From sequence record PQ287642.1: a DNA stretch of 64,000 nucleotides. One strand, given 5' to 3'. This document shows, in pieces, positions 57,525-62,694 of the stretch. The position numbers and the translations under genes are program-made. A model generated the notes under the pieces. The model was not told the origin of the DNA. It ran no database searches and saw nothing but the letters and a program-made list of their open reading frames with translations. Numbering within the stretch: position 1 is the stretch's first letter; every line of letters starts with the position of its first letter.

Positions 57525-57764
57525 TTACACTTGTGCTTCAATCATCATGAAAAGACCACCCAAGAAGAGAGTGATCAGCGCTACGATAGCAGCTCCCCAT
57601 ATGAGAGCAGTGCAAATCATATTAATGCGGTCGAGCATGATGATATCTTTCTTGGGTAAACGAGTTCGACGAACATCATCGTTATCTTTTACCAGTTTTG
57701 CTACGAACAGGGACCCAGCGATAATCGAAATAGAGATCCACCAGATCAGCATGATGGTTTCCAT
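57525..57764 (-). CDS. Two-TM membrane protein
   Basis: AAGGAG SD; two hydrophobic helices. Confidence 0.75.
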   Translation of the reverse strand: METIMLIWWISISIIAGSLFVAKLVKDNDDVRRTRLPKKDIIMLDRINMICTALIWGAAIVALITLFLGGLFMMIEAQV

Positions 57765-57777
57765 GATTAACTCCTTG

Positions 57778-58038
57778 TTAGTTCATGAGCGTCCACGGCG
57801 GTAACTGGAGAGGGGTATACACGCTAACCAGGGCCGTAATGATCATTACTAGATAAATCGCAAAGCTAATTGCCCAACTGACGCAGAGGAACATGCAGAG
57901 GTACTTCCAATTAGGAAGCCACTTGCATACACCCATTACGAACAACCACGATACAGCATAGCCAGTCATGATCAATAGTCCAGGAAGGCTAAGTGTCCCG
58001 TAAATAAACGCTATTGGGTTAGTAAACATCAAATCCAT
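57778..58038 (-). CDS. Multi-pass membrane protein
   Basis: AGGAG SD; 2-3 hydrophobic helices. Confidence 0.75.
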   Translation of the reverse strand: MDLMFTNPIAFIYGTLSLPGLLIMTGYAVSWLFVMGVCKWLPNWKYLCMFLCVSWAISFAIYLVMIITALVSVYTPLQLPPWTLMN

Positions 58039-58046
58039 GTTAACTC

Positions 58047-58235
58047 CTATTTTGGAAGCATGTCGAATAAATGATATCCACTATAGCCGGTGATAGCAAT
58101 AATAACTACGCCAAATAGAACCATAGAGATTCTATCTGAAAAGGTTTTACTGCTAGCTACCAAGCCATAGAAAGTCATTACACCTCCAACCGTAAGAGAA
58201 GCGAAGAAGGTGAGTATCAGTACAATCCATCCCAT
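58047..58235 (-). CDS. Two-TM membrane protein
   Basis: Hydrophobic hairpin. Confidence 0.7.
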   Translation of the reverse strand: MGWIVLILTFFASLTVGGVMTFYGLVASSKTFSDRISMVLFGVVIIAITGYSGYHLFDMLPK

Positions 58236-58239
58236 GGTA

Positions 58240-58449
58240 TCAACTCAGAAAGATGTTATAAAAGGTTGCCATGATCAAGTATACGGCAAGAAGGATTGCT
58301 GCCAAAGGACCAGATGCATTGAAAGCTTTAGCCAGTTTAATCGGCAGGTGGTTCGTTTTGACACCCATGACCGCAAGTCCCTGTTTCAGGAAAAAGACGA
58401 TGAACAGAGTGATGATAGCGAAAGCAAATACATTGGTGATAATAGCCAT
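58240..58449 (-). CDS. Two-TM membrane protein
   Basis: AAGGA SD; first gene after an early promoter. Confidence 0.7.
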   Translation of the reverse strand: MAIITNVFAFAIITLFIVFFLKQGLAVMGVKTNHLPIKLAKAFNASGPLAAILLAVYLIMATFYNIFLS

Positions 58450-58484
58450 TACATTGTCCTTTATGTGGGTGTATATTCACAGTT

Positions 58485-58492
58485 GTAATATA
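58485..58492 (-). promoter_or_regulatory. Early promoter TATATTAC
   Basis: TTTAAAGCC-TATATTAC-AACTG, nearly identical context to 18422. Confidence 0.75.
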
Positions 58493-58496
58493 GGCT

Positions 58497-58799
58497 TTAA
58501 ATGAACTTAAATGCATATTTGAGATTAGCTGCTGCGAACATAGCAACAGTGAAGAACCCAAATCCAGCGATTAGATAATAACGATACTCTCTCCAGTGTT
58601 TAGGTGTATCGTAGGCATTTGGATCAACTAGTGCATTACCGATACCTAAAACACAGGTACATGCAGCTAGTACACCTGTTGAAATAGCCAGTGCAGCATA
58701 AGGTAGATAGATGTATGCCACAACGGGAATTGCTATAACAATTACCAGAAGGAGGAACATTAGGTTGGGGAAAGGGAGAGCAGCGGGAGATGTATTCAT
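58497..58799 (-). CDS. Three-TM membrane protein
   Basis: AAGGA SD; three hydrophobic helices. Confidence 0.7.
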   Translation of the reverse strand: MNTSPAALPFPNLMFLLLVIVIAIPVVAYIYLPYAALAISTGVLAACTCVLGIGNALVDPNAYDTPKHWREYRYYLIAGFGFFTVAMFAAANLKYAFKFI

Positions 58800-58809
58800 T
58801 TGTAATTCC

Positions 58810-59082
58810 TTAGATGTGGGATGCAGCGATTACGAACATGGTCAGCGTAAAGTAAGCTAATACCAAGTAACATTTCTTTACGAACGTATGGATCAATCGG
58901 GTCAATGCAATCTCAGAATACTCTATAGACTGCTTTATTAACTTCGGTTTGATGTTCTGTCCGGCTAAACGTAACAAGTGTTTATAGTGCGCCGTTCTGT
59001 ACTCCTCACGGAGCTTCAGTTCCAATACATACATCACGACGGTTAATATCGGTGAAACAATAAGTAGGATCACAGGTGACAT
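58810..59082 (-). CDS. Two-TM membrane protein (start revised to MSPVILL)
   Basis: GAGGA SD before ATG 59082. Confidence 0.7.
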   Translation of the reverse strand: MSPVILLIVSPILTVVMYVLELKLREEYRTAHYKHLLRLAGQNIKPKLIKQSIEYSEIALTRLIHTFVKKCYLVLAYFTLTMFVIAASHI

Positions 59083-59100
59083 TTCTATTCCTCTTAACGG

Positions 59101-59129
59101 TATAAAGCCCACCCGAAGGTGGGCTGTTA
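59101..59129 (-). terminator. Hairpin AGCCCACC-CGAA-GGTGGGCT + TTATACCGT
   Basis: Follows the helicase stop. Confidence 0.8.
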
Positions 59130-60664
59130 TTAGTGCATGGCTATCCGTCTGAGTACCATTGAAAGAGTTTTACCGGCGAAATGCTCACTTTTATTCCGAG
59201 CATATCTCACGTGGTGCGGTATGTTTTCACACACTAGGTAGGTCAACCTAGGTACCACATCTTGGAAGTCTTTCAGTTTACGGAGACGACCCAGAATTTG
59301 AATGTTATCTTTCTTGGAATCGGTAGCTTGTAACAATACTACCTCACGAAGATTAGGGATGTCTACACCTGTACCAGATGACTTAATAGTGGACACCGTA
59401 ATGTCGTTCTTAAGTAACTGTTCATAACTGCAACCTGAGACATGTCCGTTAACCACAAGGTCAGGGAACTTAGTCTTCAGATATTTAACCAGTTTTTCAA
59501 TAAAGGCGACCGTTGCACAAAGGAGGAGTAGTTTCTGACCAGGTAACCGATCTTTCACATACACGCCATCAGCAATACGACCGACCATCCTGAAATAGTC
59601 ATCCATCCGTTTAGGATCTTTCATCATTACCGTTTCGTAACGCGCATGGTTATACGTATTCTTAAACGGTGTAAGATAATCCTTCGGTTTGATCTTTGGT
59701 TCAGTGTAGAGTAGCCCCATGCAGTTGATGTAGACATCGTAGTTGGGCAGGCGACACATGGTCTCTGCTGGCAACATCTTGTCAATCATCTTCGTCACGT
59801 AGGCGTTCCCTGTGTAGGGAGTAGCCGACAAATAGATCTGCTTATTAATGTTAGAGTAAATATCGATACGGAAGGTTAGTCCTGGATCTTCTTGAATCTC
59901 GTCGTTAATTTGCAGTCCTGCTTGTATTGCTTCGTGGAACCGGGGTGGAGGTACATTGTATCCGAGCTCATGGAGTCGGTTACCATACTTCTCAAAGTTA
60001 TCTAGATATGCCCGGTAGGTAGTAGAAGAGATTACAATAACGTCAATCCCTTCAAGATCGTTTTCGACGCCGCGATCTATTAGTTTTTGGAGTTCTGCGG
60101 AACCCGAGATGGTAATGTATCTCTGGGCAATGTCCTTGTAAGTGTTCTGAAGAGCCTCAATCCAAATACCAAAATACTTGGGAGGAACCATCACAACACA
60201 TCTTACCCCCATCGAAGCCAAGGACGCTAGGCTCGTGAGGGTTTTCCCTTTCCCGTTTGCAAGTCTACCCGTGCAGAATGTAACCAATCACGCAAAATAT
60301 CTTCACGGATGATTTCCTGATAATCCCGGAGTACGTATTTCTCGTACATTTCGTAAACAGCAATTGCTGCTTTAGGGACAGGGATATCCTCAATCTCGAC
60401 TCGTTCTCTTGGGATACCTTTGTTCTCCAGATAACCGATCAGGTCTTCTAGTGAATTTCGGTGGATATAAGTCTCTGATAGATCTTCGAAACAACCATAG
60501 TACTTTTTCTTGAGTTCCATGATGATTCGATTACCAGGGATCTTCTTAGGTTCTTTCAAAGAAAGCCCTTCAAGAAACCCCTGCATCTTAGCGAACGTTT
60601 CCCGAGTATACCCAGATAGTCGGACACCATGCGTATAGCGCTCAGCCTTGAGTATCGGTAGCAT
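59130..60664 (-). CDS. SF2 helicase (phiKZ gp75-like) encoded in two frames joined by a -1 shift at 60242-60254
   Basis: Upstream ORF ends ...LRDYQ...DLQTGKGKPSRA*; the -1 frame continues GKGKTLTSL...INDEIQE...LSATP...SSGTGVDIPNL...QILGRLR (motifs I-VI). Joined length 511 aa. Confidence 0.8.
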
Positions 60665-60674
60665 AAAAAATTAA

Positions 60675-60717
60675 CGAGGGGAAAGGGAGAGCCAAAGCCC
60701 TCCCTACCTCGACCTCC
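60675..60717 (-). promoter_or_regulatory. Hairpin between GGAGGT and the helicase ATG (looped-out SD or attenuator)
   Basis: GGAGGT-[CGAGG T AGGGAGGGC TTTG GCTCTCCCT TTCC CCTCG]-TTAATTTTTT-ATG. Confidence 0.55.
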
Positions 60718-60720
60718 ATC

Positions 60721-62694
60721 TTAGAGCAGCTTACCTCCCATGACCGCAAGATCGTAGGGATGGTCATTCCTCAGTGTGTAGAGGAAACTGCCAGGATTAT
60801 TCAACGGCTCATGTTGCTTCTCAAACGACATCGCACCAGCAAGAGAACGGGACATCATCAGTTTGTTGTATTTTTCAAACTGACCCGTAATACCCGGCTT
60901 AGGCAGACGATAATCGCGTTCAGCGATAGAGCGCACCATCATAGCATAAACCAGAACCTCACAGTGAACGGCATTCAAAGAGAACTTCTCATTCAACAGC
61001 GACACAGTGGCTGCCAAAGCATCAACTGGGTCTTTGTAGTTCTTAAGATAAGTCTTGCTAGTAAAACCTACCTTATCTGAGCTCAGTTTAGACCCTTCAG
61101 TATCACTACCAGAGTGCAGGAATGACTGAATACGCTTCATCACTTCGTACATGTTTACGTGCTTATTAGGCAACGTCAGGAACGGCAGGGCAAAGTCAAA
61201 CCCGGCCATATCGATCACGATATTATCACGAGCGTCAAGTTCCCAACGTACACGTTTGATATGTTGCAGCATTTCAGTCGATAGACTAGCTCGACGGTTA
61301 TACAGCGACACCGTCAATACATCGCCTTCGTCTACTCCATCAACCGTCCGTACCAAACCAATACGGGTCAGTTCAGAAGCACTCGGTGCTGGATATGCAC
61401 TAAGGTCATCGATCATCAGAATATCAGCCAGGTTCTGAGCTTCGTTACGACCGATCATCAAGCGGAAACCTTTGCCCGAGAGTTCTTTCTTCAGATAAAG
61501 AGTTTCAGCCGCAGATCCAGTGCGCAGGTACTTAGCTTCGACGCCACCAATCTGATACTGTTCTACAGCCGAGGTTGCATCAGTGTGTTTTGTCGACAAT
61601 ACCGCAGAAGTGATTTTGTCACCCATGGATACAGCCGATACCTGACCAATGACAGTTCCTTTTGGAATAGAGAAACTTAGTCGCCCATAACACCGCGAAC
61701 ATACACCCTGAGGATCCGGATGCACACATCCCAAAATAGAACGCATCTTAATCTTTTTACCGATAAGATGTTTCTCATCCCCTTTCAGCCAGTCCAGTTG
61801 ACCTGTCTGTTCGTTCAGATAGTACTTACCACGAAGAGCTTTCAACGTACCCTGCATTACAGGGAAGTCGATCAAGTGACCATTACAATCACCAGTGTGT
61901 AGGTTCTGTACATACTGAGCAATCAACTGAGACTTCCGGTTGAAATACTCGGTTACACGCAGTAGCTCTTTGTTATACAACAGAGCTTTGGTACCCGATC
62001 GGGATTCGATCATGTTTTCATACAGACCCCAAATACCATCAATGTAACCAGTGGTACACGGCTCACTGAAAATATCAGAGTTAATGTCTGTCGGGAAACC
62101 ACGTGGTCCGTATGCCTGAAGCAATTGCTCCATTTTCTGCGTACCCGAGCGCAGGCCCTCAATGATGCTGTTACCACGGAACTGTGTTTCGTCGTTGAAT
62201 GCTTCTTTGATCATCCCGTAAGAAATGTTTTCAATCCCGTACGTAGTAGGCTGTACATCTTGGTTAGCCTTTCTAACTGCCGGGTGATTGTACACTTCCA
62301 TAATGTCAAAGATCGACAGGGTTGCAATGTAAGCACTCAGTCGAGTAGTGGTTTCATTATAAAGCCAATTCTTTCCTTCAATAGCCAGTTTAGCCAAAAC
62401 CTCTGGATCGATCTGTTCACCACTCCATGCATGAATACCCCAAATAACTTTGTTCAGGTATTTCACAAGAGATTTAGAGGTAACCCGAGTAGATGCCAGA
62501 TGGTAATCTTTCAGAACCGGGGCATCAGGGAAAGCTTTCAGTGGATACCAGAGCAGAACCGACAGCTTGGTGATCCGATCTTTTGCATAGAGTTTCTCTC
62601 CGTCATCAAAGATGATCTCGTGCCATTCACTTGGAATCGCCCAGAGTTCATCGTAACTCATATTGAGAAGATCACGTGCTTTATACTGATTCAT
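60721..62694 (-). CDS. rpoC: Non-virion RNA polymerase beta-prime subunit, C-terminal part (phiKZ gp74-like)
   Basis: ESRSGTKALL...TEYFNRK, CVHPDPQGVCSRCYG zinc site, AVLSTKHTDA (trigger-loop-like). Confidence 0.9.
   Translation of the reverse strand: MNQYKARDLLNMSYDELWAIPSEWHEIIFDDGEKLYAKDRITKLSVLLWYPLKAFPDAPVLKDYHLASTRVTSKSLVKYLNKVIWGIHAWSGEQIDPEVLAKLAIEGKNWLYNETTTRLSAYIATLSIFDIMEVYNHPAVRKANQDVQPTTYGIENISYGMIKEAFNDETQFRGNSIIEGLRSGTQKMEQLLQAYGPRGFPTDINSDIFSEPCTTGYIDGIWGLYENMIESRSGTKALLYNKELLRVTEYFNRKSQLIAQYVQNLHTGDCNGHLIDFPVMQGTLKALRGKYYLNEQTGQLDWLKGDEKHLIGKKIKMRSILGCVHPDPQGVCSRCYGRLSFSIPKGTVIGQVSAVSMGDKITSAVLSTKHTDATSAVEQYQIGGVEAKYLRTGSAAETLYLKKELSGKGFRLMIGRNEAQNLADILMIDDLSAYPAPSASELTRIGLVRTVDGVDEGDVLTVSLYNRRASLSTEMLQHIKRVRWELDARDNIVIDMAGFDFALPFLTLPNKHVNMYEVMKRIQSFLHSGSDTEGSKLSSDKVGFTSKTYLKNYKDPVDALAATVSLLNEKFSLNAVHCEVLVYAMMVRSIAERDYRLPKPGITGQFEKYNKLMMSRSLAGAMSFEKQHEPLNNPGSFLYTLRNDHPYDLAVMGGKLL

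Follow-up and report, generated by a model that had tools for sequence, protein, structure and literature searches.

The core SF2 helicase gene of Pseudomonas phage HHBS36_1, a PS119XW-type jumbo phage, lacks a single nucleotide inside the codons of its Walker A motif, and this same break, accompanied by a slippery heptamer and a predicted RNA hairpin, occurs in seven separate phage lineages. The most likely explanation is that ribosomes slip back by one base at this site to produce the full enzyme, although all evidence presented here is comparative or predicted and neither the efficiency nor the purpose of such a shift is known. The analyzed window comprises 64,000 nucleotides of sequence record PQ287642.1. 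How programmed frameshift sites arise from ordinary genes is rarely observable, whereas here one site recurs within a single orthologous family and each split lineage has close intact relatives, so that the order of events can be reconstructed.

The affected gene belongs to the core genes of chimalliviruses (cg17; phiKZ gp075, PhiPA3 gp068, RAY gp250). Both pieces, which were analyzed separately throughout, match the DNA helicase family PHROG_16 (E 2e-15 for the upstream and 1e-26 for the downstream piece), and the downstream piece shows 71.5% amino acid identity to PHIKZ075. With Pfam only a sub-threshold Helicase_C hit was obtained (17.8 bits with a cut-off of 23.5, for the downstream piece), while ResIII reaches 22.2 bits (cut-off 22.5) on the intact orthologue of phage HPP-Temi and precomputed PF04851 hits exist on many relatives. 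The gene for the non-virion RNA polymerase beta subunit is located upstream (60721..62694, minus strand), in the same core-gene block order as phiKZ gp074-gp075 (PMC10299810). Searches in Rfam and a sequence search in the PDB gave no match, and the window contains no tRNA genes.

The anatomy of the junction described in the earlier note is confirmed, including the minus-strand reading at 60262-60227. The upstream (0-frame) ORF at 60227..60664 (minus strand) encodes 145 amino acids and ends in QTGKGKPSRA followed by the stop codon TAG at 60227..60229, seven codons after the AAG of the first heptamer. It comprises an N-terminal domain (about residues 1-95, pLDDT >90 in an AF2 model, with low confidence for residues 100-137), the LRDYQ Q-motif helix, strand beta1 and half of the P-loop, and then the out-of-frame tail PSRA. 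Structural searches with the N-terminal domain gave only weak hits (2fz4 and 5tnu at E 0.03-0.05 and TM 0.29-0.32, with equally good aIF1 hits), so that an XPB-like architecture remains only a lead. The -1 frame is open from 60287 to 59130 and includes NGKGKTLTSLASLASMGVR. Its continuation at 59130..60248 (minus strand) contains 372 codons plus TAA and encodes the rest of the P-loop (GKT), helix alpha1 and helicase motifs II-VI. The 139 codons in the 0 frame together with these 372 codons give 511 amino acids, which corresponds to the length of intact orthologues (511 in HPP-Temi and 510 in PhiPA3). Compared with them one nucleotide is absent at 60251..60252, in the third position of the first Gly codon of GKGKT, but its exact placement within the G/A run is ambiguous. 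Neither ORF product alone contains an intact Walker A motif (GxGKT/S), and only a frameshift product would contain GKT plus helix alpha1.

Two overlapping heptamers are found in the 0 frame, G_GGA_AAG at 60248..60254 and G_GGA_AAA at 60242..60248 (both minus strand), and a -1 slip at either of them gives QTGKGKT. The first is reported among the three most efficient heptamers in E. coli (PMC4066793; PMC5009743) and is invariant in all seven split lineages. The second, presented in the earlier note as part of a tandem, occurs only in the PS119XW clade, abuts the hairpin with no spacer and is of a type described as inefficient in E. coli (PMC4066793), so it is probably not the main shift site. 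A spacer of 5-6 nt (60243..60247) separates the first heptamer from a predicted stimulatory stem-loop at 60205..60242, which has 15 bp with bulges and contains the 0-frame stop. The hairpin mentioned in the earlier note is the inner part of this larger structure. The predicted stability of the larger structure is -19.2 kcal/mol and only 4 of 200 shuffles fold as well (z -2.5 against shuffles and -2.3 against synonymous recoding). In-frame X_XXY_YYZ heptamers occur at 6 per 1571 codons in the neighbouring genes, so that one in a 20-codon overlap has about an 8% chance. This estimate is not independent of GKGK coding, and the real test is therefore the comparative evidence. As a plain word GGGAAAG is not enriched in the window (5 found, 6.1 expected).

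The split is not an assembly error since seven records of this species, from Germany, Pakistan, Japan, Poland, Russia and France, carry the identical junction. In contrast, the nearest other species, HPP-Temi, as well as PhiPA3 and more than 30 other lineages have one continuous ORF with an intact QTGxGKT P-loop. Exact-pattern scans for the junction found nothing in IMG/VR or in metagenome contigs, and the informative relatives came from protein searches. These revealed six further metagenomic lineages (here labelled L027, L028/29, L030/31, L032, L033 and L035) with 58-78% amino acid identity that are split at the same nucleotide, with an invariant ACG GGA AAG G and with GKGK[TS] restored in the -1 frame. 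No cultured counterparts of them were found. Both reading frames are intact in all of them. Every broken copy whose junction could be read is broken at this one nucleotide, and the other short hits were cut by contig ends or an assembly gap. The trees need at least seven changes of state and an AU test rejects a single clade of split genes (dlnL 536, p 2e-30).

The features surrounding the heptamer follow the split state. The preceding Thr codon is ACG in 7/7 split but only 5/23 intact lineages (p 3.9e-4), and in phylogenetically independent pairs about 6 go the same way and 0 the opposite way. In every split lineage a hairpin is predicted to start at nt 1-2 of the Thr/Ser codon, with free energies ranging from -12.6 to -23.3 kcal/mol (mean -18.6). 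The mean z against synonymous recoding is -2.34 versus +0.12 in 15 intact lineages (Mann-Whitney p 0.0014), and with a binary criterion 6/7 split versus 4/23 intact lineages possess such a hairpin (Fisher p 0.002). The L028 hairpin is not significant (z +0.3 to +0.5), and PhiPA3 is among the four intact lineages that also have one. Covariation on one shared structure does not apply because the 5' arm is fixed relative to the heptamer whereas the 3' arm sits in a different register in each lineage; hence synonymous-recoding z-scores were used. An upstream SD-like stimulator is present only in L030 and L033, where it is part of S-R-R codons, and is thus not a general feature. The hairpin was built on the L035 branch (13 versus 6 polarised changes in 51 nt) and decayed in intact HPP-Temi. 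That it generally evolved after the deletion cannot be maintained, since for the window's own lineage most of the hairpin-forming bases are ancestral and shared with PhiPA3, and the excess change is on the HPP-Temi branch.

Purifying selection acts on both frames in the pairs close enough to measure. The downstream piece shows an omega of 0.036 on the window's own branch and 0.046 for L035 versus 201phi2-1, and the upstream piece shows 0.07. For the window's clade alone, however, the data also fit a very recent deletion. We estimate that any neutral phase is limited to about 3% of the branch or less, and the SNPs within the clade (3 synonymous and 3 non-synonymous) are too few to test selection. 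No two well-diverged genomes are yet known to share the split by descent.

Taken together, we consider canonical -1 ribosomal frameshifting as the best explanation, and with high though not complete confidence. In this proposed mechanism host ribosomes translating the upstream frame reach G_GGA_AAG and are stalled by the hairpin 5-6 nt downstream. A fraction slips back by one base, with the Gly tRNA re-pairing from GGA to GGG and the Lys tRNA from AAG to AAA, and continues in the -1 frame to yield a 511-residue helicase with a P-loop identical to that of intact orthologues. Ribosomes that do not slip would terminate seven codons later and release a 16-kDa N-terminal fragment, which may or may not have a role. 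The shiftiness of A_AAG depends on the Lys tRNA set of the host. The earlier note considered programmed frameshifting and a trivial one-base deletion (assembly error or recent mutation) as equally plausible; the deletion is real relative to intact relatives, but frameshifting is supported. Its suggestion that shifting sets the ratio of N-terminal domain to full helicase is only one possible purpose and is unproven, because the split lies inside RecA-like domain 1 and not at a domain border, so the termination product is not a clean module. The most likely evolutionary reading is that this is the one place in the gene where a frameshift mutation is automatically leaky (A_AAG), so that such deletions survive and are then improved by ACG and the hairpin. 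A dosage-lowering or regulatory benefit is possible. The helicase may be needed only in small amounts, which fits the mild phenotype of phiKZ 075 knock-down, where antisense oligonucleotides (ASO) did not reduce plaque counts (PMC12571901). The location of the site shows that a Walker A coding sequence (GGN AAA GGN AAR) is itself a latent slippery site. In PS119XW-type phages (PS119XW, PA1C, BRkr, phiLBG22, phiHQ, HHBS36_1) the gene is annotated as two helicase fragments or hypothetical proteins, but most likely it represents one recoded core gene.

Among the alternatives, an inactivating deletion that turned the helicase of this species into a recent pseudogene survives best but is still improbable. 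A one-base loss anywhere in GGN AAA GGN AAA gives shifty-looking runs, the closest other species is intact, the PS119XW clade is only 0.2% diverged so that the lesion could be young, and the knock-down data indicate that loss of the enzyme might be tolerated in the laboratory, which also weakens any argument from essentiality. Nevertheless, all seven lesions lie at the identical nucleotide, no extra stops or indels are present, 349-372 open codons are retained downstream under an omega of about 0.04 where measurable, and the association with ACG and with a correctly spaced hairpin, as well as the building of the hairpin on the L035 branch, has no explanation under decay. Correction at the RNA level, by stuttering of the phage or host RNA polymerase in the G3A3G3A4 run, appears even less likely. 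Transcriptional slippage is a known alternative in some dnaX and IS genes (PMC5009743) and chimalliviruses use unusual multisubunit RNA polymerases, but the runs are only 3-4 nt long whereas slippage typically needs about 7-9 identical bases, and the conserved 0-frame register, the ACG codon and the spaced hairpin are signatures of ribosomal shifting. Similarly doubtful is a true two-piece helicase with the second polypeptide of roughly 360 residues made from an internal start. Annotators do call two CDSs, and chimalliviruses have genuinely split enzymes such as the RNA polymerase subunits and the DNA polymerase. However, the P-loop Thr and helix alpha1 (TLTSLASLAS) are encoded only in the -1 frame upstream of the first in-frame Met, as is the tryptic peptide TLTSLASLASMGVR, so neither piece would carry this Thr and helix. 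Moreover, annotators disagree on the downstream start, by eye no Shine-Dalgarno-like sequence precedes the first in-frame ATG, and the conservation of heptamer, ACG codon and hairpin is not explained. A sequencing error in a homopolymer can practically be dismissed: although PA1C differs from the others by single-T indels in two intergenic T-runs, the runs at the junction are only 3-4 nt long, seven records from six laboratories and countries agree, and the six metagenomic lineages from Logan, JGI and NCBI assemblies show the same lesion, two of them each in two separate runs.

It is conceivable, though unlikely on present evidence, that the deletion combined with frameshifting was positively selected rather than merely tolerated. 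It could act as an escape from the homing endonuclease of the intein that repeatedly invades exactly these P-loop codons in the same helicase family, since an indel in the target site would keep the protein but destroy the DNA target. Alternatively it could be a translational throttle that ties helicase dosage to the state of the host's translation apparatus. Either reading would make this a natural series of newly arisen programmed frameshift sites.

Among known systems, the orfA/orfAB frameshift of the IS3 family (IS911, IS3, IS150) likewise yields a short 0-frame N-terminal protein that a -1 shift fuses to the catalytic part, using an X_XXA_AAG-type heptamer, a short spacer and a downstream stem-loop or pseudoknot, and shift efficiency sets the amount of active enzyme (PMC4066793). 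There, the shift lies between functional modules and is ancestral to the family, whereas here it lies inside Walker A and is scattered among intact orthologues. E. coli dnaX (tau/gamma) also shifts by -1 on a heptamer ending in A_AAG with a downstream hairpin, in a gene for a P-loop ATPase of DNA metabolism, and two products result from one gene. However, its shifted product is the shorter one, both products are functional parts of the clamp loader, the site follows the ATPase domains, and the heptamer is A_AAA_AAG with a defined SD stimulator. The G/GT tail-assembly chaperone of phage lambda uses the identical heptamer G_GGA_AAG to extend a short product into a longer fusion at a low fixed ratio (PMC5009743), but gene and function are unrelated and that shift is conserved in position across tailed phages rather than arising sporadically within one orthologous family. 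In corrective or "savior-indel" frameshifting, as in G-run mutants of herpes simplex virus thymidine kinase, a one-base indel in a short run inside a nucleotide-binding enzyme is partly compensated by slippage at the same run, giving a low level of wild-type-like enzyme (PMC5009743). Those are drug-selected mutants with very low shifting and no dedicated stimulator, while here the site has an efficient heptamer, a correctly spaced predicted hairpin and an optimised flanking codon and is fixed in natural lineages. Finally, P-loop inteins represent another way in which the same few codons of this gene are interrupted yet still yield an intact Walker A motif. The relatives L024, L025/L049, L040, L044, L051 and L057 carry an insert of about 360 amino acids between GKGK and T/S, which in L025 matches LAGLIDADG homing-endonuclease families, but there repair is by protein splicing and not by recoding, and the insertion point is 9 nt downstream of the missing base.

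On the minus strand, 60262-60227 reads TTG CAA ACG GGA AAG GGA AAA CCC TCA CGA GCC TAG. The open reading frame 60664..60227 encodes 145 aa ending with QTGKGKPSRA*, and the -1 frame, open from 60287 to 59130, reads NGKGKTLTSLASLASMGVRCVVMVPP followed by the rest of a helicase. Two heptamers, G_GGA_AAG at 60254-60248 and G_GGA_AAA at 60248-60242, overlap at this place and a -1 slip at either of them gives QTGKGKT. Thus, the observation of the earlier note that a helicase is split in its Walker A motif at tandem slippery heptamers is confirmed. However, the predicted downstream hairpin is larger than described there. It extends over 60242-60205 and comprises 15 bp with bulges at -19.2 kcal/mol (z -2.5), and only 4 of 200 shuffled sequences fold as well.

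The window is 100% identical to Pseudomonas phage HHBS36_1 and 99.8% identical to phiHQ, phiLBG22, BRkr, PS119XW and PA1C, which are jumbo phages of the species Pawinskivirus PS119XW. Both pieces of the gene match PHROG_16 (DNA helicase). The gene follows the non-virion RNA polymerase beta gene and is the orthologue of PhiPA3 gp068, phiKZ gp075, RAY gp250 and Goslar gp164, i.e. core gene cg17 of the nucleus-forming phages. RAY gp250 localises inside the phage nucleus (PMC10299810). ASO knock-down of phiKZ 075 lowered ChmA accumulation but not plaque or colony counts (PMC12571901), therefore the gene cannot be assumed to be essential in the laboratory. A GC-rich 8-bp stem-loop (GCCCACC TTCG GGTGGGC) that looks like a terminator lies at 59106-59125 immediately after the helicase stop codon and, by eye, a similar stem (GGGAGGGC TTTG GCTCTCCC followed by T-rich sequence) is found at about 60680-60710 between the RNA polymerase beta gene and the helicase start. 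Downstream of the helicase, at 57525-59112 on the minus strand, there is a run of five small open reading frames (62-100 aa) whose products look very hydrophobic and membrane-like.

All seven records of the species, originating from Germany, Pakistan, Japan, Poland, Russia and France, carry the same junction. In contrast, HPP-Temi (89% nt identity) and PhiPA3 (78%) have one continuous open reading frame of 510-511 aa. In the alignment the window lacks the third base of the first Gly codon of GKGKT. This excludes an assembly error, which the earlier note had still considered as part of an equally plausible alternative. PA1C differs from the other six records by single-T deletions in two intergenic T-runs flanking the helicase gene (window positions 60670 and 59117), which may be homopolymer sequencing errors in that record or real variation. 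A trans-frame product would have 139 + 372 = 511 residues with a P-loop identical to that of the intact orthologues.

The clade of the window alone is not decisive. With PhiPA3 as outgroup the downstream piece shows 63.5 synonymous and 9.5 non-synonymous changes on the branch of the window (omega 0.036), whereas the intact HPP-Temi branch has an omega of 0.053; for the N piece omega is 0.07. From these counts we estimate that any neutral phase covers at most about 3% of the branch. This means that either selection continues or the deletion is very recent, and the six SNPs within the clade cannot distinguish between these two possibilities.

The decisive evidence comes from other lineages. A protein search with the C piece returned several hits of about 350 aa among roughly 100 full-length (about 510 aa) relatives, besides three helicase relatives (P0057, P0062 and P0070; 655-661 aa) that are about 150 aa longer than the family norm. 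A search with the N piece returned only split versions. Among the latter hits were short fragments similar to the N piece (P0116-P0118) that are labelled Klebsiella pneumoniae in NCBI but sit on contigs of 259-377 nt and so are probably jumbo-phage DNA within bacterial assemblies. Inspection of the contigs revealed that six further lineages from metagenomic assemblies, namely L027 (78% aa identity), L028/L029 (69%), L030/L031 (62%), L032 (58%), L033 (62%, a 233-kb contig) and L035 (a 78-kb contig close to 201phi2-1), are all split at the identical nucleotide; two of these lineages were each seen in two runs. In each of them the upstream frame reads CAR ACG GGA AAG G.. and stops 4 or 7 codons later, while the -1 frame reads GGG AAA GGN AAR followed by a Thr or Ser codon. 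The first heptamer, G_GGA_AAG, is invariant, whereas the second one exists only in the clade of the window. The other short hits were cut by contig ends or an assembly gap. Hence, although only 60 of the 156 cultured-phage records were inspected for splits, every broken copy whose junction could be read is broken at this one nucleotide.

Interestingly, in several relatives (L025:947-3565, identical with L049, as well as L024, L040, L044, L051 and L057) the same helicase carries an intein inside the P-loop, between GKGK and T/S (GKGK|AETLY...IVTHN|TYCAL), which is 9 nt downstream of the base missing in the split lineages. In L025 the insert matches Pfam LAGLIDADG_3 (E 6e-11) and Hom_end. The P-loop codons of this gene are thus a hotspot for two different kinds of interruption. 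The intein-free allele L023 and the intein-bearing allele L044 have identical C-part protein sequences, therefore intein presence varies between near-identical alleles, which suggests recent homing or loss. Some intact relatives have an unusual residue at the variable position of the P-loop, with L (GLGKT in L023/L045, L041 and L047/L048) or G (GGGKT in L043) instead of K, and these cluster in the part of the tree where inteins are frequent.

Besides the heptamer, the split lineages share further signatures of a frameshift cassette. The Thr codon before the site is ACG, which supplies the first G of G_GGA_AAG, in 7/7 split lineages but only in 5/23 intact ones (Fisher p 3.9e-4). In phylogenetically independent pairs this association goes the same way in about 6 and the opposite way in 0 (sign test p 0.03). 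In every split lineage the 51 nt from the Thr/Ser codon are predicted to fold into a hairpin whose 5' arm starts at nt 1-2, thus leaving a spacer of 5-6 nt, with dG values ranging from -12.6 to -23.3 kcal/mol (mean -18.6). Compared with synonymous recodings of the same peptide the mean z is -2.34, in contrast with +0.12 in 15 intact lineages (Mann-Whitney p 0.0014). With a binary criterion 6/7 split and 4/23 intact lineages have the hairpin (p 0.002). The 3' arms sit in different registers and have different sequences. In L035 versus 201phi2-1 the hairpin segment carries 13 split-derived and 6 intact-derived changes, against 10 and 12 in the next 300 nt. In the window versus HPP-Temi the excess lies on the intact HPP-Temi branch, where the hairpin has decayed, whereas PhiPA3 keeps a hairpin. 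In L027 the -1 frame is closed three codons before GKGKT, and no separately initiated product could carry the P-loop.

A tree of 110 C-part proteins needs 7 changes of state, with each split lineage nested among intact ones. A careful tree of 30 lineages verified at the DNA level also needs 7, and an AU test rejects a single split clade (dlnL 536, p 2e-30). Nevertheless, counts of changes cannot separate gains from reversions, and in the Pawinskivirus pair either a gain in PS119XW or a reversion in HPP-Temi is possible. No deep clade that shares the split by descent has been sampled yet. The repeated occurrence at one nucleotide, the intact and constrained downstream frames and the associations with ACG and the hairpin contradict a recent pseudogene. 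As for transcriptional slippage, the runs are too short and the signals found are ribosomal ones. In a two-piece helicase neither piece would encode GKT plus helix alpha1. Against a sequencing error, seven records and six other assemblies agree.

In the absence of experimental evidence, the best-supported reading is canonical -1 ribosomal frameshifting at G_GGA_AAG, stimulated by the predicted hairpin, that would give a minority full-length helicase and a majority 145-aa fragment. In the AF2 model residues 1-95 appear as a confident compact alpha/beta domain, whereas residues 100-137, comprising the LRDYQ helix, strand beta1 and half of the P-loop, are not folded on their own. Fold matches of this N domain are weak, as XPB N-terminal halves and aIF1 both score E >= 0.03. 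The break is located inside RecA-like domain 1 and not at a module border, which favours an origin by toleration and subsequent optimisation, or by lowering of dosage, over a designed two-product gene. A plausible, inferred path is that loss of the base created the leaky A_AAG and that ACG and the hairpin then raised the efficiency.

We found no report of recoding in this gene or in chimallivirus helicases, and Rfam gave no match. The mechanism itself is of a known kind. In E. coli G_GG.A_AA.G is among the three most efficient heptamers, whereas G_GG.A_AA.A is poor, and the A_AA.G tetramer alone gives some shifting (PMC4066793; PMC5009743). What is new is the location inside Walker A and the polyphyletic, repeated occurrence within one core gene family.
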